NCBI GenBank assembly: GCA_964019335.1
Contig: OZ025688.1
Coordinates: forward strand, 504,758 to 568,757
Origin: Diplonema japonicum
Taxonomy: Eukaryota; Protista; Euglenozoa: Diplonemea
Reading direction: 5' to 3'
DNA length: 64,000 bases
Shown here: positions 19,907-64,000 of the stretch, one piece after another
Layout: the number at the start of each line of letters is the position of its first letter
Position numbering within the stretch: position 1 is the stretch's first letter
Position numbers and translations under genes: made by a program
Notes under the pieces: model-generated
The model's input: the letters and a program-made list of their open reading frames with translations, nothing else
What the model was told of the DNA's origin: nothing
The model's database searches: none

Positions 19907-20804
19907 ATTTCCGCAGATTGCGATATTCCTGCAAAGCACCGTTTGCTGCTACTCCGGGCAGCCAGCCACCTTCCGCCTAAACGCCAGGGCTTCGTGCGTT
20001 TGGGTTTTTGTTTTTTTTTTTAGGTCCACGTTCACCCTGATTTTTTAAACCCCCCACCCCCCTTTGTTCCGATGATAGTGTTGTGAAAGTGTCGATATTT
20101 TTTTTTTTTGATAAGGGGAAATGATCCTGGCCTTTTGGACTCTTGTTGGATAGTGCTTGGATAGAGAATGGCCCATGGTTGCAGTGTATGTTCAGTTTTT
20201 TCTCTCCCCCTCCCATACCAAAAAAAAAAAAGAAAAAGGAAGGGAAAGAAAAGTTAATTTCAATGCGCAGGGTAGCGTTCCCGTTATTATTCATAAGCAT
20301 GCACCCGATGAAAGATTATATTTAAGCACCTCTGTGTATACAAAGACCTATTACAAAGACCTGTTGTGAAATGCTTTTTTTTAATATGGTTCTTGCGGAA
20401 AGAAGGAAAAGAAGAGAGGGGCAACTTTGACTAATTACCCCCCCCCCCACTTTTTAAGCTTTGTACCCCCTCCCTGTCACATGTCATTTGCGAGAATAGT
20501 CACCATGTGACCAAGGTCTGGTTGTTCATTTGCCCGAATCTTCTTCTTCTGTTTTCTTCTTTCTTTTTTGCCGTTGTTATTGCATTCCCTTCCCCCGATG
20601 TTCCCATCAGATCGAAATCTGAAAAAGAAAAAAGAGAAAGAAACATAAAGAGAGGTACCGAAAAAGAACAAGACTGACAGGAGGATGCTTTGTAATCCCC
20701 CCCACCCCCTCTTTTTTTTTTTAATGAACAATGCGAGGCAATGTGTTTTCTTATATTCTGTTAATGTTCTTCTCTCTCTACAGCACCTCACCATCAGGCA
20801 TCAG

Positions 20805-22166
20805 ATGCCCGTACCGGTAAGCCATGGTACTGTTAAGCCGGCTATGTTTAATGCGCTTGTGAGCGGCAGTGGTGGAGGTGTCATTGATGACCTGATGAGA
20901 CGGGCGACAAGCAGAAGCGGCAGTGCCAGTGACATGTACCCATCTGTGCCCTCTGTCGCCTCGCCTTCTGTGAGCAGTGTTCCAAGGAAGCGCGTGAGCG
21001 TCAGCTTTAAAGAAGACGCAGACCTCAGCCACGACAACGACTACGACCTGTACAGAGGGGCGTCAAAGCCCATTGAGGCTGGTGAGGTCACGAAGAAGGA
21101 GGAGGTAGAGGAGGAGGAGGAGGAGGAGGTAGAAACCGTCAAGAGCGGCACGTTAAAAATGCTCTGCAGAGAGATCGATAGCCTTCAGAAGGAGCTTGTG
21201 GGTAAAGACAGGGAGTGTACCGAAGCTCATGAAAAGTACGAGAGCCTCCTCACAAGAAACCTATTAGCCGTCGAGGGGCATGGTGGCGTTTCAATGGTTC
21301 TGCGCCAGACCGTCCCCCTCCAAGAACAGGTCGAAGCCGCACGCTCCGAGATCGCCTCACTCCAAAGTGACAGAGAAGCCCTCCAGAAGGAGATCCAGAA
21401 GCTACGGAAGCATGACTCTCGGCAACAGCAGCAGATTGCAAACCTTGAGAACGAGCTCAGCTCAACACGAAGTAATGAAACAAGCTTGATAGATCACTTG
21501 AAGTTGGAGGTCAAAGAGCTTAAAGCGTCTCTCTCTGAAGCCACACTGGCCTACACAGACCTGGTGGCGAAGAAATGCACAACTCATTTCTCAACCGTCG
21601 GTTGTAATACCACAGAAACAGGCCCTGTCACGTCGCGAGAGCTGGAGCTCATTCAGGAGATGAGACAGCTCAAGCAAGAACACGAAAGCCCAGCAAGCGC
21701 AGGTGTCACACCTGCAGAATTGGCGAGTTTGCTGGAAACTGTACGGCAGGATTTGGACACACAGCTGCTGGATCTGAGGCAGAACCTCATAGCGCACCAT
21801 GTGGAAGGGCAGATGAAGTTGAAAGCTGACACGGCGAAGAGGCTATCGGAGCTCACATCAGGCGTGGAGGAGCAACTAATATATTTGCACCACACCGCGG
21901 CACTGCAAAAAGAGTACGGTTTGCAAGTAAGTTCTGTAGCCGATCTGGAGAAGGAGATAGACCACCTGCAGACAACGCGGAAGGAGAAGGAACAGCAGCT
22001 CAGAGGGCTCCAGAGAAGCGTAAGCCCCACCCCCCATCTGCGGCCCAACGCCTCACCCTCGCACCATTTGACAGGAGAGATGTCGTCGCTGCTGAGCTCT
22101 CTTCGGAGATCGACGCAGTGCAGAGCCACGCCTCCCAATATCGTAGGTGATTCTGTATTTGTGTGA
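20805..22166 (+). CDS. Coiled-coil protein, function unknown
   Basis: ATG follows CATCAG; long heptad-rich ORF with a poly-E tract. Confidence 0.75.
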   Translation: MPVPVSHGTVKPAMFNALVSGSGGGVIDDLMRRATSRSGSASDMYPSVPSVASPSVSSVPRKRVSVSFKEDADLSHDNDYDLYRGASKPIEAGEVTKKEEVEEEEEEEVETVKSGTLKMLCREIDSLQKELVGKDRECTEAHEKYESLLTRNLLAVEGHGGVSMVLRQTVPLQEQVEAARSEIASLQSDREALQKEIQKLRKHDSRQQQQIANLENELSSTRSNETSLIDHLKLEVKELKASLSEATLAYTDLVAKKCTTHFSTVGCNTTETGPVTSRELELIQEMRQLKQEHESPASAGVTPAELASLLETVRQDLDTQLLDLRQNLIAHHVEGQMKLKADTAKRLSELTSGVEEQLIYLHHTAALQKEYGLQVSSVADLEKEIDHLQTTRKEKEQQLRGLQRSVSPTPHLRPNASPSHHLTGEMSSLLSSLRRSTQCRATPPNIVGDSVFV

Positions 22167-22236
22167 AGCAATTAGAATTTAGATTAATAGTAGCATTATT
22201 GTCTTGCCTTATTTGTTTATCACACAACAGTTGCTC

Positions 22237-24357
22237 ATGTCCAGCAAGGAAATACCTTTGTCGCCGCGTACGAAGAAAATATGGCATCGGCAGAACTTGG
22301 CCGACGCCGGCAGGATGGAGCCATCACTGAAACCCAGCGATGAGCTGCTGAGTGGAGAGATGAACGTAGAGAAGGCAGAAGAATTGCGTTCACACGCGCT
22401 AGCAGCGGAAGTGGATGGCTGCAATGAAAATGCCTTGGTTTGGTACCAAAAAGAAATGCGTGTGTGGATGCACCTCATGCTTGAGCTTGGAAAAGACGAC
22501 GACGACATCCCACCACTGTTTCGAACATATCTCATGGAATTCTTGAGGTGCAGCGAAGGGGTCAGCAGGTGCTACGCGCTCGAAGGCAACGAGGACATGG
22601 TGATAAAGATCAACAAGATGGCCTTGGGACATGCAGAAGCAATACAAGGCGACCAACCAGTAGTGGCAGGCATCAAAGTACACATCGGCGATAGTTATTC
22701 GATTTTCGCTATGTCCTGTGAAGAGGAACGTGAGAGTCTCATGAACGAGCCCGAGGACTCCCTCCGCAGGCGGCAGATGACAGGTGATGAGTGGCGGCTG
22801 AAGATTGTAAACACAGCGGACAGACGAGATGAATATGTGAGGCAGGCTCGTGAATACTACAGCGACGCAGCTGTGAGCTTTAAGGTACACAATTCATTAA
22901 CAGACAAGGATGTCTTTAATAGCCACATCACACACTGTTTGGCGAAGATAGCAGAGGGTTACAGCTTGTCGGAGAACATTGATATGGCGCAGCATTATCG
23001 CGACAAGGCCAGCGAGAACTTCAGCTATTCGAGCAGCAGAGAGAAGCGTGCTGCATGGGACCACACGCAGCCATACACATCGGGGTTTGACCACGCACTG
23101 TACGACGAAGAGCTCCTTGAGGGCGACAGGAAGCGGATGACAACAATAACATCGTGTGTCGGTGGCTACCTGAACCAGGACAATGTGGTGTACAAACACA
23201 ACACGTGGGTGCCGACTGTGCATGATGTGCACGATATTCTGCTACTCAGTAATCTAGACGAGACGCTGGCCGCAACGGTGAATAACGCATCACGGTTCAT
23301 GGACCTCTTAGGGAAAGGCGATGGCGAGTGGAGAACTGTAGTCAAAGCTTATCCCCTTCTCGCCTATATAGGCATTGTGGAGGACATGCCCTCAGCTGTA
23401 GTTATTGCTGCGTCGTCATACACGCAGCTCATCGTCAAGCACACCTTGAGTACTGAGTTCCAGTACCATGAGCATTTGCACGTGTGGAGCAATCTGAGTG
23501 AGAGGGAGATCGCCAAGTGTCACGGAAACGATTGGGAAAAGAAGCGACATCCCTTCCGTCTCCCATTGATCGAGGCCATCAGGAGTGAAAACATCACTGC
23601 TGTCATACTGCTGCTGGATCTAGGGTCCTCGCCACTGGCATGTTCGCCTCATGACATGATTGCAGCGCTACCCTCGGCTATGGAAACAAATAACGAAGAT
23701 ATCATGAAGTTGTTGCTGCAGGTGCAAAATGTGAAGCTCGATTGGGAGCCGCCTTACGAGCTGGAATCAATGCGGAAAGGTGTGGACATGAACAGCGTTG
23801 TGTCGTGTGTTGAAGTTGCGGAGGAAAAGAAGAAGATGAGCTTGTCTAAAATACCGTTTGATCTGCTTTGGTTTCTTGTCGTAAACCTTCCAAAGAAGAA
23901 GGCGTTAAAATGGTACGACCAACACCAACGCATGTTCCTAACAGTGCTTAACGGCAGGCCTGATTCAGCAAAACTGATTTCAGAGATATTCAACAAGTTG
24001 CTCTTCGAAAGAATCACAGAGGCCATTGCAACGGGTCTCAGCATGAACCTTCTGACAGTGGTACCTGTGCTCTCGGATCTTGTGACTCATGCTGAAAAAA
24101 TACGTACGATATGCTTCTGCAATGACACACCTCTAATCAAGCTGCTTTTGACTTGCAGTGTAGACATCAATAGCAAGTACAACAACCGCCCTATCGTGTC
24201 GTACCACCTTGAGAAGGGCAACACGGACATTGTTAAGTACATCTGTGACACCTTCACAGGTGACAACGGCCTCGACGAGTCGATGCTCACACAGGAAGAG
24301 CGAGACATGCTCGACAAGGTGAGCGACAAGTGGGGATTGAGTCTTGTAGAGACATGA
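22237..24357 (+). CDS. TPR-like plus ankyrin-like repeat protein
   Basis: Helical TPR-like N-half; ankyrin-like units PLIEAIRSENITAVILLLDLG, ALPSAMETNNEDIMKLLL and HLEKGNTDIVKYI. ATG follows CACAACAG. Confidence 0.7.
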   Translation: MSSKEIPLSPRTKKIWHRQNLADAGRMEPSLKPSDELLSGEMNVEKAEELRSHALAAEVDGCNENALVWYQKEMRVWMHLMLELGKDDDDIPPLFRTYLMEFLRCSEGVSRCYALEGNEDMVIKINKMALGHAEAIQGDQPVVAGIKVHIGDSYSIFAMSCEEERESLMNEPEDSLRRRQMTGDEWRLKIVNTADRRDEYVRQAREYYSDAAVSFKVHNSLTDKDVFNSHITHCLAKIAEGYSLSENIDMAQHYRDKASENFSYSSSREKRAAWDHTQPYTSGFDHALYDEELLEGDRKRMTTITSCVGGYLNQDNVVYKHNTWVPTVHDVHDILLLSNLDETLAATVNNASRFMDLLGKGDGEWRTVVKAYPLLAYIGIVEDMPSAVVIAASSYTQLIVKHTLSTEFQYHEHLHVWSNLSEREIAKCHGNDWEKKRHPFRLPLIEAIRSENITAVILLLDLGSSPLACSPHDMIAALPSAMETNNEDIMKLLLQVQNVKLDWEPPYELESMRKGVDMNSVVSCVEVAEEKKKMSLSKIPFDLLWFLVVNLPKKKALKWYDQHQRMFLTVLNGRPDSAKLISEIFNKLLFERITEAIATGLSMNLLTVVPVLSDLVTHAEKIRTICFCNDTPLIKLLLTCSVDINSKYNNRPIVSYHLEKGNTDIVKYICDTFTGDNGLDESMLTQEERDMLDKVSDKWGLSLVET

Positions 24358-24395
24358 TGCTTACGTCGACTACGTACCGCAGATGACACACTAAT

Positions 24396-27300
24396 ATGTT
24401 GTGCAAAGAGACGCTGCACCACACACTGTGTGGGTCCCTCCCGCCCCACGAACGATGGGATGTCATGGACTGGATCAAGGGCACACGGGTGAAGGAATGT
24501 GTACCGTTGGTTACAGAAAGCACCCAAGAGAAACTACGGGAGGTGCCTGCCATTACGGTATCATGTCCTGAGAGTGACGCATCTGAGGGTGTGGACGAAG
24601 GACAGGAAGCTGCGAAGATGCTGCTGTCGATGTACGACACGGGCGAGCTCACAGGGCATGATCTGAGAATGAGGAAGCTCGCCGCACCTTTCAGGGCTTC
24701 GAATGATCTACCACAGGACGATGAAAGAAGGTGGTGGGGAGAGGCGAAGGGTTTCACTATTGCTTTGGTGCAGACATTCGGGGAAAGAATGCAAGAAGTG
24801 GAGCAATTGTTTAAGAGATTCCCGCATGGGATGCACGTTCACAAGTTCGTGTCAATCATGCTAGACGTCGTACGGAGGGTGCAGCGGGGGCAGGCACTGC
24901 CATTGGTTGAAGAGGACGGTAAGAACGTACGTGCTTACTGTAACTCAACACGTGAGACGGAGCAGGACTTGGTGAACGAATGGGTGAGAATGCGGGCGAA
25001 GCAACGTAGCCATGTTCACAGCATTGACTACATGCAGTCTAATAGCGTGCTCGAATGGTTTCTTGCCGACCTGTTCTGTGCCATCGACCACCACGGCAAG
25101 TGCAGCGTCACATGGTCCGACTTCAACGCCTACGTTATCGACGTCACGATGCAAGGCAAGGAAAGCTACTACGAAGAGACGCCGATCGAGCCTTACACAC
25201 GCAGCACCATCGAAGCGGACCTGTGCGACACCAAGAAGGTGATCTACCACGGTGGGCTCGATAGGATGGTGTTCGTCACTGGAGACAACCATTGCAACCT
25301 CGTCTCCCCCAGCTTCAAGATCATTCAAGAGTACCCGATAAAACCTTCATACGGTAATGTACTTGACGTGACATTCATAGCAGGCACGCAGTGCAGATTG
25401 GCAGCTGCGACCAGCGACTGTGTGGTACGTCTGTTTGACATCTCTTCGAGGCAATTCCTTTGCAGCGAGACATTTGGCGTGTCACAGACTGCGCTCCATT
25501 GGTGCGAGCGGGAATCCTTTCTGTATTCTGGAAATAGAAACGGCAAGATATCGTGCCTACGACTGACTGACGACGACAAACGGTGCCACGTGACAGAGAC
25601 GATCTGCAGCCACCAGAGCACAACGACGGCAATGCTTACACTTCCCGACTCACAGCTTGTGTCTGCATCTCTGGAGCGTGATATCAAAATTTACAACCCT
25701 GCCACACACCAAGAGGCAGCGGCGCTGCGTGGCCACAAGCACGGAGTCTTCAGCTTGTCCTTCTCTCCTCTTTACAACTTTATTGCGTCATCAGGCTTTG
25801 AGCCGCAGCCTTTTCTGTGGGTTCCTAATGCGTCGAACTCGAAGCCCTTCATCCTGCAGGATCACGACCCGCACACGGCACGGATAGTAAAGGTGCATAT
25901 GGTTATGGGCACACCACAGCTGTTAACGATGGACCTTAAAGGTATACTGAAGGTGTGGGATGTGAGAACACTTAAGGTTCACTCAACTATTTCGTGTTCC
26001 GAGGGAGGCTGCAAAGTGCAGGACTTCATGCACTACGACAGGAGGAACATGGTCATTCCGTGCGGTGGGGTGAGTGCCAAGAAAGACCATATGGCGGTTC
26101 TCCGGCAGAATCTAGTTGGGAGAGGCACCAGACCTGTGGTAGCTGTCGTGATACTAAATAGCATCAAGGCGTTCCTGACTTGTTCCGGGGGCGATGGGTT
26201 GCTATGGGATGCTCACAAGGGGCACTTACTCAAGATATTGTTCTCCTGTTGCGATAAAGTATGCTCGGTGTGCGTCCCGCCATCTGAGTTGCGAGTGTTC
26301 ATAGGCACCTGTGCGGGTGCCATCATGGTGTATGGCATTGAGGGCGTCTTCTTGAAGAGGATTGTCGCGCACACAGGCCCTGTTATCTCTCTACTGTACA
26401 TAAACAGCATAGAGGCTGTCCTTTCGATGGAGAAGAACGGCGGGCCCTCGGTGGTGTCTCACGACTTGTACTCCAAGAAGCTCGGGAATGGGAAGATCCG
26501 AATCGATGCAAAATGTGCTGCCTACTGCGCAAGGATGGACCTACTGCTGATTGGTGAGGCTGTAAATGTAGTCTCGGTGTGGGACTATCGCCAAGGGAAG
26601 CTGTTCATGCGGTGTGTAAACTACCCATGTGACGCCCAGGTGACAAGTGTGTTAGTCGGGAAGGACGACGAAGTGTTTATCTCCGCAGACAGCAGTGGTG
26701 GGTTCAACATGTACAACTTCTCTGGAGACAAGCTGGCCAGCTGGGTGAACAACAATACTGACACAGCATACACACCAGCTATCATTGACATGCAGTACTT
26801 TGCAATGTACAACTTCCTATACTGTTGTGATACTAGTGGCTGCATTCTCATCTATGAGCTCGATCCTCCGCAACAGCACGTACCGCAGTTCTATTCATCT
26901 GTGTTCGCGAACCCGAAACGGGGTCCCAACGCAACTAATGATACAGTTAAAGAAGAGACGCAGCCCCTCCGTACACCCCCTAGGCTCATCTGGTACTGGA
27001 AAGGGCACAAGGGTCCTTGCAACGTGGTCCAGATATGGGTGCCACCCACGGTTGGAGTAATGTGCGTTACGACAAGTGGTGATGATGCGGAGGTGCGGAT
27101 ATGGAGCATGTGGGGCAGACTGCTAGGTACGCTATCGATAAAAACGGAGCACGAGAACGCTGTCGCAGTGCACCCGAAAGAAGTGCACTCTAAGCTAGTT
27201 GAAGGGACTGCTGTCCCAGCCCTGAGGTACCCAATGATGACGGGTCCTCTTGCTGGGTCACTGTGTGGCCTGTTTGGACTCGAGGAGCCACATCCTCAGG

Positions 27301-28241
27301 CCTACAACGACATCCCTCTGCCCTGGGGGGAGCAAGGGTCTGTGTACGGCACTCCTTCTATCAGTGACATGCTGTACACAAGTAGCAACGGAGAAGCTGT
27401 CGTAGAAGAACAACAGGTGCTCCTTGTGACGCCCTCCTTGTGCCCTGGGGATGACAAGAAGGCAAATAAAGTTCGTGTGAGACGACGCGACAGAAAGCGT
27501 GTGAAGAATAATAGTAAGGTGCGAAAGACTGTTTCCAGAGTAGATCACAGCGAGATCTTCAAGCAGAGACTTCCCAGTGCAGCGCGTGTTCTGATGTGGT
27601 GTGCTGGTGTGGTGGTTGCTGTTGTTGCCGCACCGCCCCCTTACAAACTAACTCTTTCGGAGACGCGCAGGGTGGAGCTGTGTGATATGATTGACAGGCT
27701 AGTCAAATTGCTGCCTCTGCAAGATCCGGTAGTGTCTCAGCGAGATGCAAAAAAGGCCCGCTTGCTTATCGAGCATGCCAACGAGTGGCCTGCAAGCCCA
27801 TCAGCTGCTGCACAGCCGCTGGAACACAAAAGGTTATGCAGAGCACATACGAAGCTTAAGGATGACTACACAGTACTAGTTTCACCGGTACGCCAGAGAG
27901 ATGAAATAGTGAAGCCATTCGTACCGAAGAATATACCACCGTTGGAGGAGTATTGTCCTTCTCTAAACTACTTCTCGTCACGCCTTTCAGCAAGTGTAAA
28001 AGGCCCTCACTGTATCATGGAAGTACCACAATCGGCATGGGCAGCTTGCGTAGCTGCGTTGGCCACTGCCGGCACGACAAGCGTGCTCTACAAGAGGTAC
28101 TTGATTTTTCTAAACAGGTTGAACATCACAATAAACCACTCACCGCATGAAGGACGGCCCCTGTTATCACAGCCGGTGTCCCGTCATGTTGGCGAAAACC
28201 TTAACCCAGTTAAATTACCGAAAAAGTATCGTAAACTGTAA
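24396..28241 (+). CDS. EF-hand plus WD40-repeat protein (WDR49/EFCAB8-like, probably flagellar)
   Basis: EF loop LFCAIDHHGKCSVTWSDF; many WD40 units (LRGHKHGVFSL, ILKVWDVR, WKGHKG...TSGDDAEVRIWS). Confidence 0.8.
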   Translation: MLCKETLHHTLCGSLPPHERWDVMDWIKGTRVKECVPLVTESTQEKLREVPAITVSCPESDASEGVDEGQEAAKMLLSMYDTGELTGHDLRMRKLAAPFRASNDLPQDDERRWWGEAKGFTIALVQTFGERMQEVEQLFKRFPHGMHVHKFVSIMLDVVRRVQRGQALPLVEEDGKNVRAYCNSTRETEQDLVNEWVRMRAKQRSHVHSIDYMQSNSVLEWFLADLFCAIDHHGKCSVTWSDFNAYVIDVTMQGKESYYEETPIEPYTRSTIEADLCDTKKVIYHGGLDRMVFVTGDNHCNLVSPSFKIIQEYPIKPSYGNVLDVTFIAGTQCRLAAATSDCVVRLFDISSRQFLCSETFGVSQTALHWCERESFLYSGNRNGKISCLRLTDDDKRCHVTETICSHQSTTTAMLTLPDSQLVSASLERDIKIYNPATHQEAAALRGHKHGVFSLSFSPLYNFIASSGFEPQPFLWVPNASNSKPFILQDHDPHTARIVKVHMVMGTPQLLTMDLKGILKVWDVRTLKVHSTISCSEGGCKVQDFMHYDRRNMVIPCGGVSAKKDHMAVLRQNLVGRGTRPVVAVVILNSIKAFLTCSGGDGLLWDAHKGHLLKILFSCCDKVCSVCVPPSELRVFIGTCAGAIMVYGIEGVFLKRIVAHTGPVISLLYINSIEAVLSMEKNGGPSVVSHDLYSKKLGNGKIRIDAKCAAYCARMDLLLIGEAVNVVSVWDYRQGKLFMRCVNYPCDAQVTSVLVGKDDEVFISADSSGGFNMYNFSGDKLASWVNNNTDTAYTPAIIDMQYFAMYNFLYCCDTSGCILIYELDPPQQHVPQFYSSVFANPKRGPNATNDTVKEETQPLRTPPRLIWYWKGHKGPCNVVQIWVPPTVGVMCVTTSGDDAEVRIWSMWGRLLGTLSIKTEHENAVAVHPKEVHSKLVEGTAVPALRYPMMTGPLAGSLCGLFGLEEPHPQAYNDIPLPWGEQGSVYGTPSISDMLYTSSNGEAVVEEQQVLLVTPSLCPGDDKKANKVRVRRRDRKRVKNNSKVRKTVSRVDHSEIFKQRLPSAARVLMWCAGVVVAVVAAPPPYKLTLSETRRVELCDMIDRLVKLLPLQDPVVSQRDAKKARLLIEHANEWPASPSAAAQPLEHKRLCRAHTKLKDDYTVLVSPVRQRDEIVKPFVPKNIPPLEEYCPSLNYFSSRLSASVKGPHCIMEVPQSAWAACVAALATAGTTSVLYKRYLIFLNRLNITINHSPHEGRPLLSQPVSRHVGENLNPVKLPKKYRKL

Positions 28242-28289
28242 GCGCTATCTTTGTTTGTTTGTTCTATTGCAAGCTTTATTACAGTTGGG

Positions 28290-31200
28290 ATGGGGAAGAG
28301 TCAGCCTCATGTGAACAAATGGAGCAACGAGCGAAAGAAGCTCAGCAAGAAAATAACAAAAGTAGAGGCCGCTGAAGGGAAGCACCCGTGCCTAGTTCAA
28401 GGGGGATGCAGTGGGGGTGCAAGATGCTCTTTGAAACCTTTTGCTCAGGGTGTATGTAAAATGTGGATTGAGGGTAGGTGTTGCGAAGACGAGTGTCTGT
28501 ACATACATGATGTGGTGACAAGAAAGAGAAAGCGGAAAAGACCACCTAAGAAGCCACCTGTTGTTAGTCTCACGAAAGAAAGCAAAACAGAAGCCGAAGG
28601 GGAATGGATGCCCCCTGTTCATACTTTTTCCCTACCAGTGTCATGCTTTGTGACTGAAGGCAGCAGGCGTCCTTTGATGACCCTGGATGCCATCAAGGAC
28701 ATCGACTTGTGGGCCGCTGTCTCGCCCTTAGAGCTGGCTGCCACACCACCTGTCCACGACACAGAAGGCTTGTGGAAGCAACCCAAGAGACGCAGGCACA
28801 ACGTGCACGTGAAGTACTCCGATGACTCTGAAACGGTATTGCTCCATCCCCTGCCACAGGGGGACGTTCAAAAGGGAACATACAGCGATGGTTCCCACAT
28901 GGCGCAAGCGGTGGGTGTGATTTGCGACTGGGTGTTCAGAGCTGCCGACATCACAGAGGGTGACATATTATACAATTCATGTGACACGCGGCCTACTGTA
29001 GAGTGGCAAGAAAAGGCACAAAGGTGTACACTAAAGGCTGCTGAGACGTGGAAGGCGACAAATTTCAACAAGTTATCGCAGTGCATCCCCAGGTGCTACA
29101 TGGATGTGAAGGGCACATCAGGACAGCTCGCAGCAAGGGCATGCCCCGTGATATACGTGCGGAAGTTCGCGCACACAGTGGTCACGTCCCTGGGTTCAGC
29201 TTTCGTAGATGACAACAAGTACGGCAAGCAAAATCTGTCTCTTTTGTGCGAGTATTTGGATGCCCTGTTACAGGGGAACGGCGGAAGCTTCGGTGACTAC
29301 ATACCATCTGAGCGGTATGTGCTGCGGCTGAAGCTCAAAGCACTTCCATGGCTACCCGCTCACGCTAATGATGCAGTGAGGCATGCTTGCAGATCACGGC
29401 TGGCTGGGAGGTGGTTTCACTTCATGATCTCGCAAGTAGCAGTACCCCTTGTAAGGCGATACTTCCCTGCACAACGAGAAGACGGCCCTTCACTCCTGTT
29501 CTATCACTACCCCGTGTGGAGGCGGCTGTGGCGTGCATTCTATGAGCGTCCCCCTGGCTATGTGAAAGGTTTCCCATCGATCCCTGTACCCGTTTCGAAG
29601 GACATCTTGAAGCTGTTCACTCTTTTAGATCGCGCAACAGATGGTGTGGTGATGCTGCGGGAGCTGCATGAGGGACTCCAGGCTGTGCTGAATAACGATA
29701 CTCACATTGGGTCCATCCATACACAAGTGCAGCGGGTGCTTAAGATCTTGTCTGAAAAGGGAGAGCTGCTAGGTGTGAACGATGCAAGGTCTTGTTATAT
29801 TATGCTTATGAAGGGCGTGACACGGCAGAGCGAGTTTGATGTTGTCCCAGTGGTAGAGGACGGTCACATTATCAGCAGGCACACAGGACGTGGTCGTGCT
29901 AGAATGGGTGGTCCTGGTCCGATGCAGCTCAGGGTAAAAAAGACTGGAGGCCCGCGATGGGCCAGAGTGCTGTGGAAATGCGGTGTGTCCCCGAGTGACA
30001 TATCAATCAGAGGTACAACGATACGGCGCTGGGTCCACAGGCAGGCCACCCTCGGGCTGCAGCGAGTAGACTTGCGACATGCCATCTACCCGCTGGTAGG
30101 CGGTAATATCAATAAACTAAAACCTTTTGTGAAACTGAAGTCCAAAAACAGACGGATTACGTTGCCCTCGCCCATTTCAGATGCCGAAACGGTGTTCGAG
30201 GTCTCGGAGGATCTGAACTCAAAGACGGTGAAGCTGCTTGCAAGAGCAGGTACCAAGCACATGGTCAAGGAAGAGGCCTCCGAGCACACGATGCTGCGGC
30301 TTTTGAAGAAGGCGATGCCATTTGTAGCCCCTGGTGGGTACCACTTGCTGCATACAGATGCGTCACAGGCGTATGACGCGATCGACCACGATGCCGCCTG
30401 TGATATCTTAGACACCATGAGCTGTGAAAAGAACTCAGAACTTACGCAGCTGATGATGGAGGCCGTTAAGGGAAGGGCGTCGGGTGTGCCACAGGGTTGG
30501 GTGTTGAGCGAATTGATCAACGACGAGCTGCAACGCAGGAAGGTTGAGACGATGAAGAACTTCGGGCGTGACGCCGTGTCACCCTACTTCATACGGATCG
30601 CGGACGACATCATTGGCATCGCCTGCAGCAGGGAGACCATGGACCTGCTTGTCCTGTACTTGGCGCAGCCGGACTTCGCACACGGTGTGATCCCGAACGC
30701 GCTCAAGAAGCAGGCTGTGACACCCTCCGACTTGCACGGCACTGTGCTATTCAACGGGCTTCGCATCAACACAAAGCTCGAGGTCTACCCTGACATCTTT
30801 AAGTACTGCAAGTCGCCAATGTGGAAGCGCATCACGGTGCACGCCAGAGGAACTGTACCTATGTATACCACTGACCCGGAGCTGCTGGCCATGCTCAGCA
30901 ATGGGAACATCACTGACTCAGTCATCCTCAAAGGCGTGCAGGAGGCAGAGAGAAGGAAGACGCTTAGGCACCGCAAGGCACCAAATGTGTCGCGGAGGTT
31001 GGTGGAGTACCCGCTGACCTTTATAAAGAATAATTTGAAACACATTGCCTTGGACCCCGTGTTGAATGACAGGCGCAGGCTGCACAAAACACTGCTCGTT
31101 GCAGTGCTGATCGGATGGTGTGCCTTCTATGCCCTGGTTGGGAAAGGGCTGTTGCCGCAGAGCTGCACCGCGCTGGTGCGGAGGTCTGCTGATGTGCTGC

Positions 31201-31502
31201 ACGTGAGGATCTTTGCCTTCATCTCAACGTTCCGTGCTGTGAATGCCGACTGCGGGAGGAGCCTAGTCCTGCTCTCCAGGTACCTGACAGCACACCATGC
31301 AGTGTCCGCTGTTCCGCCTCACTCTCCTTATTACTACCCTACGATCTCCTTGTACACTGATGCCTTACGTGCGTATTCTTCACGCAAAGAACACTCTTGC
31401 AGTGTGTGCTGCAGTGTAGCGAAGCCATCTGTGTGGGAGCTTGTGGTTAGATCAGCAATGCAGAATTGGGTGGTGCCTTTCGAGGGGGGCTTTAGGGATT
31501 AG
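28290..31502 (+). CDS. TERT: Divergent telomerase reverse transcriptase (TERT-like) with N-terminal CCCH Zn finger and EF-hand-like insertion
   Basis: Motifs in order: TFLY-like VKYSD, QFP-like YVRKF..V...YGKQN and LKLKALPWL, T-like RWFHFM...PLVRRYF...LLFYHYPVWRRL, motif 1/2 LRVKKTGGPRWARV, A TDASQAYDAIDH, B' GVPQG.VLS, C FIRIADDII, D GVIPNALK, E FNGLRIN, CTE TKLEVYPDIFKY and ALDPVLN. All three catalytic Asp are present and no endonuclease domain is visible. Confidence 0.85.
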   Translation: MGKSQPHVNKWSNERKKLSKKITKVEAAEGKHPCLVQGGCSGGARCSLKPFAQGVCKMWIEGRCCEDECLYIHDVVTRKRKRKRPPKKPPVVSLTKESKTEAEGEWMPPVHTFSLPVSCFVTEGSRRPLMTLDAIKDIDLWAAVSPLELAATPPVHDTEGLWKQPKRRRHNVHVKYSDDSETVLLHPLPQGDVQKGTYSDGSHMAQAVGVICDWVFRAADITEGDILYNSCDTRPTVEWQEKAQRCTLKAAETWKATNFNKLSQCIPRCYMDVKGTSGQLAARACPVIYVRKFAHTVVTSLGSAFVDDNKYGKQNLSLLCEYLDALLQGNGGSFGDYIPSERYVLRLKLKALPWLPAHANDAVRHACRSRLAGRWFHFMISQVAVPLVRRYFPAQREDGPSLLFYHYPVWRRLWRAFYERPPGYVKGFPSIPVPVSKDILKLFTLLDRATDGVVMLRELHEGLQAVLNNDTHIGSIHTQVQRVLKILSEKGELLGVNDARSCYIMLMKGVTRQSEFDVVPVVEDGHIISRHTGRGRARMGGPGPMQLRVKKTGGPRWARVLWKCGVSPSDISIRGTTIRRWVHRQATLGLQRVDLRHAIYPLVGGNINKLKPFVKLKSKNRRITLPSPISDAETVFEVSEDLNSKTVKLLARAGTKHMVKEEASEHTMLRLLKKAMPFVAPGGYHLLHTDASQAYDAIDHDAACDILDTMSCEKNSELTQLMMEAVKGRASGVPQGWVLSELINDELQRRKVETMKNFGRDAVSPYFIRIADDIIGIACSRETMDLLVLYLAQPDFAHGVIPNALKKQAVTPSDLHGTVLFNGLRINTKLEVYPDIFKYCKSPMWKRITVHARGTVPMYTTDPELLAMLSNGNITDSVILKGVQEAERRKTLRHRKAPNVSRRLVEYPLTFIKNNLKHIALDPVLNDRRRLHKTLLVAVLIGWCAFYALVGKGLLPQSCTALVRRSADVLHVRIFAFISTFRAVNADCGRSLVLLSRYLTAHHAVSAVPPHSPYYYPTISLYTDALRAYSSRKEHSCSVCCSVAKPSVWELVVRSAMQNWVVPFEGGFRD

Positions 31503-31644
31503 CTAGAATACGAAACGAATCGGGGGAGTTCCCCCTCCCCTTCCCCCCGCATTTTTCTTTTGTTTGTAAGATTTATCAAGCCACGCACAGCATACACACA
31601 CACGACAATGCTGTGAAACGTTCTGCCAACATAAGCAGCTATCG

Positions 31645-32261
31645 ATGTCGAGAAGCAAAGTAGACGTGGCCCAGTACCCGTCGTACTGCAAGTATATTCC
31701 GGTGATTTCACAGCTGCTGGCGTCGCTGTCGAAGAGAGGTGACGTGGTGGCGAAGCAAAAGGGTTTGTCGGAGTCCGTGTACGATGGGGCCAAGATGCCA
31801 TCCATTGCACTAGAGGACTACTTGAACAGGTGGGTGAGGTATAGTTTTTGCAGCAAGGAAACGTTCGTTCTGGCAGTGGTGTACATTGACCGGCTATCTC
31901 ACGCCACTAATGTTGTCATCACATCACTAAACGTGCACAGGTTAGTCCTGACTTCGTTGGTCCTTGCCGCGAAGGCTCGGGACGATATTTACTATTCAAA
32001 CAAGGTATTTTTTTTTAAGTTTTTGCAACTTAAATTGAACACAGTACTATGCCTCCATCGGAGGTATCACTACTAAGGAGATGAACAGGCTTGAGGCACA
32101 ATGGCTCACGGACATCGATTGGCATGTCTTCATCAGTCCTGAGCAATACGTCATGTACACCTCGGAGTTTAACAAGCACGCTGGGGTATGGAAGATTCTT
32201 TTAATAAAAAAAAAAAATGGACGATCGACAGATGCAATCCGCTACCGAAGAGGCTCGTTGA
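31645..32261 (+). CDS. PHO80/cyclin-U-type cyclin; introns 32005-32044 and 32186-32231
   Basis: PSIALEDYLNRWVRY..CS, LAVVYIDRL, NVHRLVLTS..LAAK..DD.YYSNK|YYASIGGITTKEMNRLE. Confidence 0.92.
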
Positions 32262-32696
32262 ACATTAGGTGGAAAAAAGAATTTTTTTTTGGTTGCTACC
32301 ATATAGGCCCCCCCCGATTTTTTTTTTGATTTGACAACAAAAGAAAAAAGAAGCGGGAAAAGAAAAAGAAGAAAAAAAACGGGAGGGTTATTATGAGCAA
32401 AAACAAAAGAAAAAAACAAAACAAAACAAAAAGAAATGCTCCATAAAAAAGTCCCCCCCCCCCCAGCAACAAAGAAGAAGGGTGAAAAGGTGGCAAGGAA
32501 CGGACCTGATAGATCACCTTGAGAAGGTTGCTGTTGTGTTGCAATGTTTTTTTTTTTTCTTACCATCCTTATATCATGTTTTCCTTTTTCCGTCACAAGA
32601 TTTTCATTTTTCAAAAAAAAAAAAAAAAAAAAAAAAAAACAGAAACTTTGATTCACATGTAGTAATTTTAGTACCACTCAGCGGTATTAAATGCAC

Positions 32697-45968: not shown

Positions 45969-48900
45969 CGAAAGATAGAAAGAGAAGTGAGATCATGGAA
46001 AAAACAAGAAAAAAAAAGAAGAAATGAAAAGAAATACACCACACCGCACCGATAGCGAAATAACAGCTTCAATCAAATCAAAAATTATGTGTCCCTTGCT
46101 ACCCTTCGTCATGGTTTTTTATGGATGGGAGTGGGGGGGGGGAGAAAAAAGGAGGGGGGACAAAGAAAAAAACAAAGAAAAAGCACCAAAAGTTCTTTTG
46201 TGGCAAAGAAACAGCTCTTTTTTTACTGTTGTATTTTTTATGTACCATCAAATCAATTTCCTGCTTTTTTTTTTAGAAGTGAAAAAAAGAAGCACAATAA
46301 AAAAAAAAGTAAACTTGAGTCGTAGCTTAGCATTTCTACAAATTGTATTTTTTTTTTTTTTTTTTTTTAAGTTTAGTATTGAAAAAAGTTGGCTGTCTTT
46401 GTCAAAATTGACTTGGCGGGGATTTTCTTTTTTGTCCCTTCCAAAAGGTCCTTTCCCCCTGCCTCCCTTCGTAGGAAATGGTGTCCCCAACCCAAATGTA
46501 ACAATTTCCCCCCTACTTTTTCAGGGGCAGCAAGACCTGTAGCCATGTCTAGGTGTGTGATGACACCTCCCCTTAAGCGAATCATTTCAGGAAAGTCTGT
46601 GTTCTGGTGACCGCCACAAGTTGACACTCCAATTGTGTCGCGTGACTACAAATACCCCGCACCCCAATGTCTTCATGGTACACTTTGGAGCAAGACTGTG
46701 GTGGTCATGCAGAGTGCAGTTGCCTTAAAGCACCTTGATGCTAAAAAGATCGAGTTTTTTTTCTTCTTTTTTTTTTCCACCTGTTTTTTTGAAACAAGAA
46801 GAAATTCACTCCCACCACTACAACTACTCTGCAATTGAAACAAAAAGAAAAAAGAAAACAAGGGCATGCATTGCTAGCTAACAAAAAGAGAGTAAATACC
46901 GCTCGTTACTTTACAGAAGAGAAAATGTGTGAAAGTTTGCAATCTAATGGCTGCAGTTGGGGAAAGGGGGGGGGGGGGGGGGGAGGGGAAATGAAAGAAA
47001 ATTCACTCCCCCCCCCACGCACTATTCAGTTATTGTAGTCCCCCCATCGCCTTGTAGTTGGTGTAGGTGTAACTATTTTACTTATTTAGAATAAAAAAGA
47101 AATACTGTAAACAGCTGACTTGGACCGATTACTAATGAATTGGTTTACAGTCCGAGGGGGGAGGAAAAAAAAAAGAAAAGAAACAGGAAAAGAAAAAGGA
47201 ATGAGCTATGTGCAAATGGCTTTTTTTTTTTTGATACTCATTTCCTCTTCCTGTGACCAACGACAGACACCCCGCAGTGAAGAAAAATAAAAAGAGCGGT
47301 AAAATCGACAGTTCTGTTTTGTTCTTTTATTTCCTTTAAAATACATTAAAAATGAGTTTTCTCTCTCTCTTTTTTTTTCTTTTCCCCAATTCCCCTCCTT
47401 TTTGTCCCTTTTTTACTCTTCTTACCCCTCCCGCACACTTCTATTCTGCTATGTGTTTTTCTTGTTTATTTTTTTTTTTATTATCCAATGAAAGTTTTTT
47501 TTCCCCTCTCCCTTTCTCCCCTATATTATCTAGTAAGAGAAAAAAAGAAGGAAAAAAAAAATCAAATATTTTCCCCTCGCCTTTTGTTTGTAAGCAAGAG
47601 GGGGGGGAAGCGAATCTAAGAGAACTTTTTTTTAATTTACCGTCCCTTATGTTTTTATTTTTTGTGTCAAATATTTAAGGTTTGTGTTGTTGCTTTTTTC
47701 TTGTTTTTTTTCTCTCTCACCCCACACCCCCCTCCCCGTGCAGAGCCCTTACGCGGCAACAGAGTACTGTGGACACTTGACTAGACGCGGCTTGAAATAA
47801 GTTGCCAGCTGCCTGTGGCAAGAGTGTCCGTATTAGAAAAGAATAATTTAAAAATTTAATTTTCTTATGTAATTTGCGCCAGCAAAAAAAAAAAAAAAAA
47901 GAACAGGAGATGCGAAGAAGAGAAATCTAAAGAAAGATAGGTTTTTCTTTGTAATTTCTTTTTTTTTTTTTTAATACTTCTATCATTACATTTTTTTATT
48001 CTCAGGCAATTTTTTTTTTGGCAGGCGTCGTCGTCTAAGCTTCTCCCACATCTCCTTCACTTCACGGTGAATTCTTCTTTTTTTATTTTTAAAAATAAAA
48101 AATATCATCCTTGAGGGAACGAACAACAAAAAAGAAAGCGAATGACCTCCCCTCGTTATTTTCTTTTTTCTCTTTCTTTTTGGGGGAAAAAGCCAAAAAA
48201 AAAATAAAAATAAAAAAAAAGAGAATTTTTATATGTCCCCCCTATAAGAGTTCTTTTTTTCTGCCTGGAGAAATTTTGAATTAAATCAAAGTATATTTTA
48301 GTGGTGACCAAGGTTACCCCCCCCCCTTTTTTTCCTTATATTATCAGTCCCTCTTCCCCTTCTGACCTGAGGTCAGATCGTTTCTTAAGCAAGTCGAAAG
48401 CACCCGACATGACGAGTGACACCAACTAGAATACATATTTTTATAAGAACCCCTTGAAGAAAAATCCCTCACTCCACCTTGCACATGCATGGGAGAACGC
48501 CTTTGTCCCATAAGGCACAGATCACCTGAAAATGAAAATCAGGCTCCCGTGTTTGGATACTTGGAGAGGGAAAAACAAGGGAAGAAAAGGAAGAAATAAA
48601 ACCAAGGGAAGAAAAGCCCCCTTCCCCTCCCCTCCCCTCCCTCTCTTCCGTCCTTTGTTAGGCAAGAACCAATAGTTATCTTTTTATATTGTTCAAAAAG
48701 ATACTTCAAAATAACAAAATTACGCTCCCCCCCCCCCCCCCCCCACCTTTGCCCTCTTTTGCTTCCTTTTTTTTGTGAAAAAAAGAAAGAGAGGTCAGGG
48801 AGTGGGGGAGGGAGAGAGAAAAAAATAAATTTGCAAAGGGGGGTTTCCAGCACCTGCGGGATATTACTGAGCTAAGAACTGGGCATGGTGTTTAATGAAA

Positions 48901-49508
48901 TCTGCCTATAAGTTAGTATATTAAGAGGCTGCATTCAGGGGGGTAAAGGTTGAAAAGATATCCTTATTCACCGCTTAATACACTACACAAAAAAAAATAA
49001 ATAAATAAAGGTATCGTGTACATATTATAAATTGGGGGCCCAGCAAGCGAGATTAAGGGGAAATATTTTTCTTTTTTTTTTTTTTTCCACTTCCCCTTAT
49101 CCTTTCGTCCCTTAGTTTGAGACCTTTTAATTTACCCATCCCCACCCACCCCCTTCCCGCCATGTTACTTTTCCAATGGCTGCGGCGATTTTTTTTAAAA
49201 AAAAGTATAATGCAGACCGCCCGTGATATTGGCATTCTTGAAGGGGAAACAGCCAACAACTTATAGCCACCATTTTGGTGGCAATAGGGAGCAGGGTGGT
49301 TTTTTTTATATGTTTTTTTTTTTAATTAGGGGCGGTCCTCAAGTGGGATTTGCCCTTAAACATCGCCCCCTTTTTTTTTATTTTCAAATACTGTAAAACC
49401 AACAGTAGATTTTAAAAAAAAAGAAGCTTTCCATCACCTTTTTTACCCCCCCTTTTCTTTATACTTTCCGTTTTTATATCTTTATTCGGGGGGGGCATCT
49501 TTGTATGA

Positions 49509-49546
<38 letters not shown>

Positions 49547-52061
49547 GCGGTTTATCTCTCCAAAGTGTTTTGACACTCAAGACGTGTGCTGCCAACCATT
49601 GGGCTGGGTTGGAAGGGGAGTCTTCGTACGCCCCTGCGGTGCAGCATCTCGGTGCTTCTACCGCCGGCCTCCAATATCTCCGTGAGAGCACTTCAAAGGA
49701 ATGAGATAGCTTTTGGCTTTCAACTCCTGAGGCTTGCGAACACTTGAACAGATATGAAGCGTTGATTATTCGTTAAGTTTTTCAATTTCCAAGCTTTCTT
49801 TACCTCTCCACTTTTACTTTCTACGGGACCACAGGGGACTTGGGAGGCTTCGGGGCGAAGTTTCACAACGGTGGCCGCTGTGTCACATACTGCATGGCAC
49901 CACTAAAATCGAGACAACTTTTTCTCTTTTTATTTTCTTGTGTCCCTCCCGCACTCCCCCCCCCGTAAATAGACTCTCACCATAAAAGAATGTCAATGGC
50001 CAATGTGAGTTTTTTACCAAAAAATACACAGAAACTATAATTTTTTTGTTTCATTATCCCCCTTTTTCGGGGGGGTTTTTTTTTTCTCCGGACGATTCAG
50101 TTAAACCGAATAGTTTTTTTTTTTGAATTTGTGCTTTGAACTCAACTTTTAGTAAAGTGAGTTTTCAGGACTGTGTTTTTTATTTTTTTATTTTCTTGAT
50201 TTGTCCTGTAAAAAAAAGTTTTCTTTTTTTAAATGTTAGATTGCCTCATACCATTGGCTACCTTGCCTACGGAGTGTAGCTACAAAAAGAAAAAAGAACT
50301 TTTTATCAGAAAAATATTATCTGAAAAATATTTTTTATCTGTAGTCACGAGCAGCACCTCCAACGCTGTAGTGTTGTTTTTATTTGTTTTGGTTTTCCCT
50401 CCCTCGGGTAAGTTCTCCCATGGGTGTCTATTCAGGAATTTTTTTCTCAAATAAAAAATAGTCCTGTTCACCATTTGACGTACTTTTTTCAGGTGGTGGG
50501 GATAACATGAAAATATAAGAAAAACATCAGATGTGTTGTTCGCTGTTGACCTCCTCGTCGGTCATCACCGGTAGCGCCCGAGTGGAAGAACATAATGCAG
50601 ATGCTCAGGGTGACGAACAGGCAGCAAACTGCACGAGCGCAGAATCTTGGTTACCCGGGACGCACCGGCTGGGTTGAGCTGTACACCGCACGCATTAAGG
50701 ACACGACGCGGAACGCAGAAGAAGCTACAACTCGGCCGCGGCGCGCCCCCTGTAATAAAGTAGACAGTTCTTGTGCAGGGCGCCGCCAACACCGGCCTCC
50801 TTTAACTCATATATTCTTTATCATTTTGTTCGGATTTGCTGAATAAGAGCCCTTTGGACAACGATTGGCTTCGCAGGTGAGTCTTTGCACAGAAATAGAA
50901 CACGAAAAAGGAAGTCCGAGTTTTTTTTTTTAACTACAATTTTTAAAAATAATATCTATACATTTCCTGATGTGATTTTTCCGGTGGTAAAAGAAAAAGA
51001 AAAAAAAGGAAAATCCCCATTCTTATCTTAACCTGGTCTGCTGGTTGAGGTAAACTTCTTTGCACGAACGAGAGTGTGGGGATTCAAGGAAGCTCTTTTG
51101 TCATTTGGAGGAAAAAAAAGGAAAGTCAAAAATATATAAATTAAATTAAAAGAGAGAAAAAAGAAAAGTCTCTCTACGACACTCCTCCCCATTATTTGAT
51201 TTTTTTTTTTTTGCAAGCAGAGCGCCGCCAACACCGGCCTCCTTTAACTCATATATATATTTTTTTGCATTGGAGGTTGTCACTCAACAGCTGTCCTTTG
51301 CACATCCATTCTTCCTCTCTTTTTTTCTCGCACCGAAATCGCACAACGAGGGCACATTCCTAACTTCATTATTCAAATATCGTGGCATTTCCCCCCTCCA
51401 TTTTTTTTTCCTTTTTTTTTTTTGCATTCTCTTTTTACATTTCTCCTTTCTTTTTTTCCTTCTTTTTTCTTTTGGCGCTTTAAAAAAAAAAAGAATTAAA
51501 GATTTTTTTTTAAAAAAACGGCTTATGCACACCCTCCCCCTTCCCCCATTCCCACTTCTTTCTTTTCCCCTCCCCTTGTCTCGGGGGAGGGAAAAAATGG
51601 ACTCTTGTTGTCATTTTTTTTATGACCCAGGTTTTTTATCTACGATGTGAACATAGAGAAAAGTAGGCTACTCTATGTGAAATAGATTCTGGACTGGAAG
51701 AAGAGTGGGAAAAGAAAAGAGAGAGTTTTTTTGTATGCTGCCAGCCGGGCAAAGGAATAGGAAAGGAAGGAAAAAAAGAGGTTCCCCCCCTTTTTTTGAG
51801 AATTACTACTTTTTCTGTCGTCTTTTATTTCCTCCTTACCCTCCTTCCCTAATGTTGCTGTGGGCTGTGCACATAGTATGTTGGCAATGCGCTACGATTC
51901 CTTAAGACACACAGTCGGTCGGGAGTAGCAGCTAGTGCCACAAGAAATCTAGCAACAAGTGTCCTTCAGGTGCTGCGGGTGGCACCGCTTTGCTGCGGGT
52001 TGCACCTGCAACACAATAACGTTTTTTTTTTTTGTTTTGTTTTGTTTTCTTTTTTTTTTAA

Positions 52062-52782
52062 CCATTAAACCCACATGTCATATATATATGACATAAAAAA
52101 AAAAAAAAGAAAAAATCTCTAGGCCTTTTGGTCAAATTATGACCTTTCTTTCACTTTTCTGTCGCCATTGCGCGATTTTTTCCACTTTGTTTGGCTAAAT
52201 GCTGCCCTTTTTCAGCACTATTTTAAGAATTTGAGAGGTCGAAAATCCGGGAAAAAAATGATTTGAGAATGAAGAATAATCGACTGGAGCAGAGGGCTGG
52301 TCGTGAGTGATGAAGAATGCAAAGAAATGTCAGACTCTCCAGCTTTTTTATTCGTTTTTTACACCATACACCCTCCGATGCCTGACAGCATTCACAAACA
52401 ACCACCTAGAGCGCCGCAAAATCGACAAAAGAGTCACGGAAGCCGAAATCAGAGCGTTTCTGGGCCTATGGGTGTTAATGGACCTCACCACCCGTCCCAA
52501 CTTCCGTGACTACCGGAAAACCGATCCTGACTCCATTATGCTTACTCAGGGGTTTGCGCGCGTCATGTCCGGAAACCGGTTTGCCCAAACCAAAAAGGGT
52601 GTTGGGTCAAAAATCATAAGTTCAAAAGCCAGTTCAGGGGAACCCTGATACCTGAATGTCTCCAGAGGTCATTTCTCCATAAAAAGAACACTTTGTATGG
52701 TTAAATGCTGTCATTTTTTTGAATTTTTTGGAATCGCCTCAAAAATGAGCTTTTTTCGGTTTTTTGCCTGTGGGCTTAATGG
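52062..52782 (+). mobile_element. Internally deleted (non-autonomous) piggyBac DNA transposon
   Basis: TTAA flanks at 52058-52061 and 52783-52786; 14-bp TIRs CCATTAAACCCACA / TGTGGGCTTAATGG (1 mismatch). The internal ORF fragment (LF..FF...TN...T.AEIRAFLGL..LM...DY.KTD...F..VMS.NRF) matches the piggyBac transposase N-terminus; no DDD core. Confidence 0.88.
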
Positions 52783-63394: not shown

Positions 63395-64000
63395 AAACCC
63401 GCAAACCCGCAAACCCGCAAACCCGCAAACCCGCAAACCCGCAAACCCGCAAACCCGCAAACCCGCAAACCCGCAAACCCGCAAACCCGCAAACCCGCAA
63501 ACCCGCAAACCCGCAAACCCGCAAACCCGCAAACCCGCAAACCCGCAAACCCGCAAACCCGCAAACCCGCAAACCCGCAAACCCGCAAACCCGCAAACCC
63601 GCAAACCCGCAAACCCGCAAACCCGCAAACCCGCAAACCCGCAAACCCGCAAACCCGCAAACCCGCAAACCCGCAAACCCGCAAACCCGCAAACCCGCAA
63701 ACCCGCAAACCCGCAAACCCGCAAACCCGCAACCCGCAAACCCGCAAACCCGCAAACCCGCAAACCCGCAAACCCGCAAACCCGCAAACCCGCAAACCCG
63801 CAAACCCGCAAACCCGCAAACCCGCAAACCCGCAAACCCGCAAACCCGCAAACCCGCAAACCCCCGCAAACCCGCAAACCCGCAAACCCGCAAACCGCAA
63901 ACCCGCAAACCCGCAAACCCGCAAACCCGCAAACCCGCAAACCCGCAAACCCGCAAACCCGCAAACCCGCAAACCCGCAAACCCGCAAACCCGCAAACCC
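63395..64000. repeat. Telomere-like 8-mer tandem array (AAACCCGC)n / (GCGGGTTT)n, about 76 units, running off the window
   Basis: Near-perfect array; the only variants are homopolymer-length changes near 63731, 63861 and 63893. Confidence 0.97.

Follow-up and report, generated by a model that had tools for sequence, protein, structure and literature searches.

How might a telomerase handle its primer and its RNA template when two accessory features of the canonical enzymes appear to have been lost? The question is raised by a gene in a stretch of 64,000 nucleotides from the marine protist Diplonema japonicum (assembly GCA_964019335.1, contig OZ025688.1, positions 504,758 to 568,757), which we refer to as the window and whose own numbering is used below; all features described lie on its forward strand. 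A single uninterrupted open reading frame (ORF) at 28251..31502, with its first ATG at 28290, encodes 1070 amino acids plus a stop (coding sequence 28290..31502), and profile, language-model, structural and tree evidence point to a telomerase reverse transcriptase (TERT). Most TERTs have a TEN domain with a GQ motif, which is absent in some insects, and TEN together with the TRAP part of the insertion in fingers domain (IFD) is held to let telomerase add many repeats without releasing its substrate. By sequence comparison and structural modelling, the diplonemid protein has the core of a TERT, comprising the RNA-binding domain (TRBD), the T motif, the reverse transcriptase (RT) motifs 1, 2, A, B', C, D and E with their Asp triad and a C-terminal thumb, and by the same means it has neither of the accessory features TEN and TRAP; on these grounds it is a new architectural variant of the TERT family. 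A genome assembly of D. japonicum YPF1604 has been published (PMC13598402).

The predicted protein carries the core of a TERT

In a six-frame search of the genome, the locus scored 28.4 bits against the Pfam family Telomerase_RBD, which passes the cut-off, and two orthologues scored 28.9 and 26.6 bits against a Pfam cut-off of 25; on the window protein itself RVT_1 and Telomerase_RBD were sub-threshold and the Pfam family TERT_C gave no match. When a profile of five diplonemid sequences was compared to all PDB sequences, TERTs were the only matches, with Candida TERT matching over motifs B' to E (E 8e-6) and Tetrahymena TERT over the TRBD. Comparison by hhalign to ten canonical TERTs gave 96.8% over the TRBD (E 3e-10), and a longer alignment paired the T motif, motifs A, B', C and E, and the thumb. 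TERT clusters were also nearest to the protein in the ESM Atlas.

The fold was examined in an AlphaFold model made from a 16-sequence alignment, with a predicted local distance difference test score (pLDDT) of 62.9 and values of 70-94 in the TRBD, palm and thumb; an earlier model from five sequences (pLDDT 45) had been set aside before the fold search. The best 18 Foldseek matches were all TERTs (E 1e-10 to 5e-6), with other RTs appearing from 1e-4. By VIA-align, residues 206-1058 of the model were laid on residues 355-1132 of human TERT with a Z of 19.1, and the best structural matches, human (7qxb, 7bg9) and Tetrahymena (7lma), reached Z 15-19 with the RT motifs and T motif aligned. Isolated TRBDs gave Z 14-15 at a root mean square deviation (rmsd) of 3.0-3.5 (4lmo, Z 14.8, rmsd 3.5 over 201 residues; 5c9h, Z 14.3), Tribolium TERT gave Z 14, and other RTs did not exceed 10.4.

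In a small RT tree, the diplonemid sequences formed a clade (support 99) that was sister to the canonical TERTs (branch support 100), with the TERT group standing apart from five of the genome's own RTs of the non-long-terminal-repeat (non-LTR) type; the tree carries a long-branch warning and its outgroup is narrow, consisting of these five non-LTR sequences without Penelope-like or group II sequences.

The domains follow one another as TRBD (residues ~205-423, 28902..29558), RT fingers and palm (residues 540-850, 29907..30839) and C-terminal extension or thumb (CTE; residues 860-1060, 30867..31469, pLDDT 80-94). The T motif FPAQREDGPSLLFYHYPVWRRLW (29463-29531) aligns with FYVTE...VFYYRKPVW of canonical TERTs, and within the fingers and palm we located motifs 1-2 at 29925-29969, A at 30351-30383, B' at 30483-30500, C at 30597-30614 and E at 30750-30770. 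The catalytic Asp residues are D690 in motif A (30357; HTDASQAYDAI) and D772/D773 in motif C (30603/30606; IADDII), and R559, D690, D696, G732, P734 and Q735 sit in alignment columns that hardly vary among 16 TERTs. In the thumb, the structural alignment extended to residue 1132 of human TERT and 591 of Tribolium TERT, and hhalign paired LDPVLN with the canonical E-I region. An initial annotation, made from the letters of the window alone, had already proposed a TRBD-RT-CTE order and these three catalytic Asp positions; the order now has the agreement of Pfam, hhalign and structure, the coordinates were reproduced on recomputation, and the RT, which that annotation had considered might fall outside the TERTs, groups with them in the tree.

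The fingers insertion leaves no room for TRAP

The distance from the motif A Asp to the B' Gln (D690-Q735) was recomputed as 45 residues, as first annotated, and it is 45-48 residues in four diplonemids compared to 102-128 in eleven canonical TERTs. What remains of the IFD (residues 699-731, 30384..30482) is predicted to contain two short helices (700-709 and 716-727); as judged from sequence and model it is too short to accommodate a TRAP, in agreement with the initial annotation, and the helices fit an IFD without one.

Elsewhere the protein is longer than its canonical relatives. The T motif is separated from the motif-2 Arg by 164-195 residues in diplonemids (490 in Diplonema papillatum) compared to 54-72 in 11 canonical TERTs, so that about 100 extra residues, helical in character, follow the T motif. 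In D. japonicum a lineage-specific insertion between the T motif and motif 1 (residues 437-511, 29598..29822) is modelled as four helices with a pLDDT of 75-85, and no Pfam family matched it.

A CCCH module at the N-terminus

Ahead of the TERT ring, which by structural alignment starts at about residue 205, the protein begins with a helix followed by a putative zinc module of CCCH type (residues 32-73, 28383..28508). Its first half, HPCLVQGGCSGGARC at 28383-28427, is an HPC-x5-C-x5-C arrangement (H32-x-C34-x5-C40-x5-C46), and its finger half, CKMWIEGRCCEDECLYIH at 28455-28508, reads C56-x7-C64-x4-C69-x3-H73. The module has six Cys and two His, which may coordinate two zinc ions. When searched by phmmer against the whole protein library, residues 24-111 matched euglenozoan CCCH proteins (E 1.8e-11 to 2.6e-4) which carry the Pfam families zf-CCCH, zf_CCCH_4 and zf-CCCH_DUS3L alongside domains of the UBA, CUE and Smr types. 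Pairwise BLAST delimited residues 31-75 as a single module of ~45 residues (E 3e-11 to P0008), of which there are five tandem copies in P0005 and two in D. japonicum's own P0008. Direct matching to Pfam zf-CCCH_3 was sub-threshold (E 0.011-0.017), and the family profile weakly resembled the fingers of CPSF30/Yth1 (E 0.14). All Cys and His positions of the module are kept in the TERTs of Flectonema and D. papillatum, both of which add a closing His in the first half; one further orthologue model from ENA is without the finger region, its start being possibly mispredicted. The pLDDT of the module is 45-64. From these sequence matches we take it to be a genuine CCCH-type module. The initial annotation had found the C-x7-C-x4-C-x3-H finger and the RKRKRKR that follows it at 28521-28541, both of which stood on recomputation, and had called the preceding Cys cluster degenerate; that description has to be given up, because copies of this repeated euglenozoan module in P0005 and P0008 ordinarily begin with the same half.

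RKRKRKR opens a basic stretch, RKRKRKRPPKKPP (residues 78-90, 28521..28559), which resembles a nuclear localisation signal, has a basic counterpart at the same position in four full-length orthologues, and may have a role in nuclear import. It is followed by a conserved block of ~50 residues, WMPPxHxFSLPV...VSPLxLA (residues 100-150, 28587..28739), in which identity is 37-42%, close to the level of the TRBD, and for which no regular structure was predicted. Between this block and the TRBD lies a variable linker (residues 151-204, 28740..28901) with 5-17% identity, many gaps and a pLDDT below 50. A TFLY-like motif had at first been placed at ~28812 (residue ~175), about 100 residues after the finger; this falls in the linker, the least conserved stretch and one rich in gaps, and the motif is not supported there; the finger is separated from the TRBD by ~130 residues when the start of the TRBD is taken from structure.

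No recognisable TEN domain

Several approaches were negative for a TEN domain. The first 303 residues gave no match to Pfam TEN_TERT at E <=1 (two canonical TERT controls scored 26 and 21 bits), hhalign of the diplonemid N-terminus against the canonical TEN region gave 0.2-0.3%, whereas equally shallow halves of the TEN profile found each other at 98.7%, an ESM Atlas search with residues 90-290 returned no usable match, and VIA-align found no structural counterpart in the model for residues 1-352 of human TERT. Residues 75-235 have a pLDDT below 50 and almost no predicted secondary structure, conservation over residues 75-205 is on the whole poor, and the stretch 90-190, where a TEN fold had initially been thought worth seeking, is predicted to be unstructured. 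From these results TEN is absent as far as the tools used can see, as had first been proposed.

An alternative is that the function of TEN is present in a form that cannot be recognised, either because the block at residues 100-150 with its flanks is a divergent or miniature TEN-like domain or because a separate protein supplies TEN. The block matches the TRBD in its degree of conservation, the N-terminal model was built on four sequences and is of low confidence, and the TEN_TERT profile is weakly sensitive even on true TERTs, as the control scores show. Set against this, the profile-to-profile comparison failed where its equally shallow control succeeded, known TEN domains are 150-190 residues long compared to about 50 conserved residues here, secondary structure is nearly absent in the prediction, and a six-frame genome search gave no TEN_TERT match, in a search that had no eukaryotic positive control. 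We therefore consider a hidden or separately supplied TEN improbable.

A single gene with orthologues across diplonemids

In the 62.5-Mb genome, the Telomerase_RBD family and a canonical TERT query (P0009) matched this TERT locus alone, and the second, canonical TERT that the initial annotation had envisaged was not found by either. One other Telomerase_RBD match, on contig C70, was rejected as K/F-rich low-complexity intergenic DNA. Genome searches with TERT_C, TEN_TERT and an alignment (A2) found nothing, results which weigh little or nothing because there was no eukaryotic control and A2 missed the window's own gene. An exhaustive protein search found full-length relatives in diplonemids only, and orthologues were identified in Flectonema neradi (37% identity, end to end), D. 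papillatum, Lacrimia lanifica and one further genome in ENA; the domain layout is common to the orthologues across Diplonemea. A kinetoplastid source, at first suggested by gene density and strand bias, was rejected in view of these diplonemid orthologues and of GT..AG introns of 40 and 46 nt in the next gene downstream; the spliced-leader tail on relatives' RNA contigs is of kinetoplastid/diplonemid type, and one protein from a D. japonicum transcriptome matches the genome at 100% identity. When the gene was compared to transcript contigs of relatives over ~1466 coding bases, 19 of the 22 differences were synonymous and 3 non-synonymous, indicating purifying selection.

This gene is probably the diplonemid orthologue of TERT and likely the sole telomerase catalytic subunit of D. 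japonicum. Since no other TERT was found in the genome, we regard the telomerase of the organism as the likelier reading, ahead of a telomerase-derived RT that serves some other role.

Telomeric arrays have an inverted strand polarity

About 600 bp of (AAACCCGC)n (63397..64000) close the window, whose last letter is also that of contig C41; we infer this array to be the product of this TERT. Forty-four contig ends were sampled (22 left, 22 right), of which 28 bore arrays: 16 of the 22 left ends started with (GCGGGTTT)n and 12 of the 22 right ends finished with (AAACCCGC)n, with the opposite orientation observed at 0 of 44. As the orientation was uniform at left and right ends, the C-rich strand runs 5' to 3' into every array-bearing end, and the inverted orientation is a genome-wide rule at the sampled ends and not a local rearrangement. 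To our knowledge, all known telomeres made by telomerase have the opposite polarity, with a G-rich product. No (TTAGGG)4 occurred in the genome. A scan of metagenomes for the repeat found chiefly short internal arrays, uninformative on polarity, and a string search of the literature gave chance primer matches only. The unusual repeat and its polarity, like the diplonemid-wide layout and the ~100-residue insertion after the T motif, were absent from the initial annotation.

Most counted units (745 of 907) were AAACCCGC. At a few ends, L008 (left end of contig C2), L005 (C41 left), L038 (C35 right) and L052 (C21 right), there were homogeneous blocks of variant units, namely AAACCCCGC, AAAACCCGC and the 10-nt AAACCCGCGC, a pattern that fits persistent slippage, several templates, or copying from array to array. 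The arrays join different unique sequences directly, with no shared subtelomere and often after ...GC or ...CCGC; the junction in the window (63352-63400) falls inside an ORF with ankyrin repeats, and further junctions were seen at L004, L006, L011, L031, L032 and L036. These junctions look like de novo templated addition of telomeres to broken 3' ends.

A search for a telomerase RNA template with the pattern VGCGGGTTTGCGG gave 28 hits, of which about 15 are internal and several fall on the edges of arrays or in short interstitial ones. Single matches of 1.5 units in L051, L055, L058 and L059 are possible candidate template sites. Separately, interstitial runs of 2-5 GCGGGTTT units were observed far from contig ends in L048, L053, L054 and L056 (contigs C2, C24, C34 and C38).

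A proposed telomerase with rebuilt primer and RNA handling

We favour, as somewhat the more probable account, that the gene is the diplonemid TERT orthologue and encodes a telomerase in which the handling of primer and RNA has been rebuilt. On this account the mRNA would be trans-spliced 5 nt before the ATG, and the TRBD of the translated protein would bind a telomerase RNA whose template would carry about 1.5 copies of GCGGGUUU. The enzyme would then add an 8-nt repeat to chromosome 3' ends, making AAACCCGC from a G-rich template, and the holding of primer or RNA near the short template duplex, in place of TEN and TRAP, would fall to the CCCH module, the conserved block or a partner protein. 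As the initial annotation suggested, the finger may anchor RNA or primer, and processivity, template or role may be altered.

Several points weigh against this account. The structural model is moderately confident (pLDDT 62.9, from 16 sequences); the N-terminal alignment consists of four sequences and may conceal a very divergent small domain around the conserved block; the trans-splice site is deduced from the point where a transcript contig starts to align, next to 15 unaligned letters; the template-pattern search singled out no hit as the telomerase RNA; and recombinational copying would explain the variant-repeat blocks at least as well as one fixed template would.

The last two of these points also speak for an RT derived from telomerase that no longer maintains telomeres, in which case the AAACCCGC arrays would be kept by recombination or break-induced copying and the protein would have some other role with RNA. 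The homogeneous variant blocks at particular ends would be expected of such copying, and the protein has lost TEN and TRAP, on which repeat-addition processivity depends in canonical enzymes. However, nothing is missing from the catalytic triad, the T motif or the TRBD, all of them under purifying selection, the arrays lie directly on unrelated unique sequences at many ends, once inside a gene, as is typical of healing by telomerase, and no other TERT was found in the genome for the job. We judge this possibility unlikely.

With a rebuilt telomerase as the preferred reading, the polarity of the arrays raises a further and more tentative idea, that this TERT lies behind the inverted telomere: it would copy a G-rich RNA template and add the C-rich AAACCCGC, and the loss of TEN and TRAP, which elsewhere deal with G-rich single-stranded DNA and the short duplex, and the gain of the CCCH module would be part of the same rewiring. 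We offer this as a conjecture that could well prove wrong. If it is true that TERT makes the C-rich strand, this would be an exception to the rule that telomerase products are G-rich, and an altered TERT would be the obvious place to look for the cause. Diplonemids are an ecologically dominant class of protists, and a whole class that has lost TEN and TRAP, and has gained a zinc module, a conserved block and a helical insertion, would amount to a natural experiment in the rebuilding of primer and template handling.

Comparison with known TERTs and CCCH proteins

The TERT of Tribolium castaneum is a TRBD-RT-CTE ring without TEN and without TRAP in its IFD (PMC5855555, PMC8096264). In structure the diplonemid protein resembles it (PDB 3du5, 6usr; model residues 216-1059 on chain residues 13-591, Z 14), but it is almost twice the length, has a longer thumb, and adds the CCCH module with its basic stretch, the 50-residue block and the ~100-residue helical insertion; in addition, the sister group of diplonemids has TEN. 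TERTs without TEN and TRAP are mostly from insects, in which telomerase biology is reduced. In the literature library searched, we found no TERT with an N-terminal CCCH module and no paper on a diplonemid telomerase or telomere.

Trypanosomatid TERTs (Trypanosoma brucei, Leishmania) are also euglenozoan, have a trans-spliced gene context and share TRBD, RT and CTE. They are set apart by published descriptions, in which they are TEN-TRBD-RT-CTE proteins (PMC8621916, PMC5855555) with no N-terminal zinc finger reported; the diplonemid layout is not the one described for trypanosomatid TERT (PMC8621916), whereas the initial annotation had allowed that euglenozoan TERTs might already be known to share it. 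T. brucei copies the template CCCUAACCCUA into TG-rich TTAGGG repeats (PMC8643685). In comparison to human TERT, the diplonemid protein has no counterpart of residues 1-352 and its A-to-B' distance is 45 compared to about 121 residues.

The CCCH module has its relatives in euglenozoan proteins with several such modules, P0005, P0008 and P0012 (Neobodo designis, with a UBA-CCCH-CUE-Smr arrangement), which share HPC..C..C...C-x7-C-x(3-7)-C-x3-H at 35-44% identity. In those proteins two to five modules stand in tandem and there is no polymerase, whereas the TERT has a single module fused to it.

The start of the gene and its neighbours

Upstream of TERT and in the same frame is a gene for a WD40 double propeller of 1281 amino acids, which ends 48 nt before the TERT ATG. 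The spacer contains a stop, a polypyrimidine tract and TTACAG, and we take the tract with its AG (28246..28284, AG at 28283-28284), which ends 5 nt before the ATG, to be a probable spliced-leader (SL) acceptor. In a ~97% relative, an RNA-derived contig (X2, record 7) aligns from 28284, with 15 unaligned letters upstream, and the RNA contig of the downstream neighbour gene behaves alike, with an SL tail CTGTACTTTATT. Both a transcript-derived Flectonema protein and the D. papillatum model of that genome's authors begin at the same MG... Given the spacer, the start of the transcript contig and the shared MG..., we take 28290 as the TERT start and consider a trans-splice site at 28284/28285 likely.

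That the protein instead starts upstream, fused to the 1281-residue WD40 ORF, with an N-terminal domain overlooked, is highly improbable: the two ORFs do share a frame with a single stop between them and are joined in the NCBI model KAJ9473248.1, but the stop, polypyrimidine tract and AG lie between them, the transcript contig starts exactly at the AG, splicing at the best GT..AG pair (28238-28284, 47 nt) would not keep the frame, proteins of both Flectonema and D. papillatum share the MG... start, and the upstream ORF is a double propeller without TEN.

The order WD40-TERT-cyclin is conserved in D. papillatum, in which public annotation misses the gene by fusing it to its neighbours: in NCBI, WD40 and TERT form one protein of 3401 amino acids (KAJ9473248.1) named 'Vegetative incompatibility protein HET-E-1', and in the EukProt model TERT is joined to the downstream cyclin (1800 amino acids).

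From 20685 to 31502 the ORF list shows four long ORFs on the same strand with gaps of 10-39 nt, and 48 nt from stop to ATG before TERT. Downstream, a PHO80-type cyclin gene starts at 31645, with trans-splicing of the mRNA at about 31590; two GT..AG introns are visible in this gene (31590-32290) from RNA contigs that come from two related organisms, at 32003-32042 (40 nt) and 32185-32230 (46 nt). The run of same-strand genes is broken by a 7.5-kb stretch of low G+C content (46000-53500, 37-42%) which has no ORF of 150 amino acids or more and in which the strand skews flip sign. Elsewhere in the genome, the right end of contig C50 (L040) finishes in an SL RNA gene (...GCTACAGTTTCTGTACTTTATTG|GT; sequence ...CAGTTTCTGTACTTTATTG|GT), which suggests that an array of SL genes broke the assembly there. 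At least 150 matches to non-LTR-type RTs were found genome-wide, with long open frames of up to ~2100 amino acids; many were equal in score and clustered on few contigs (for example C52, C61 and C51; L060-L069), and the retroelement load is large and apparently recent.

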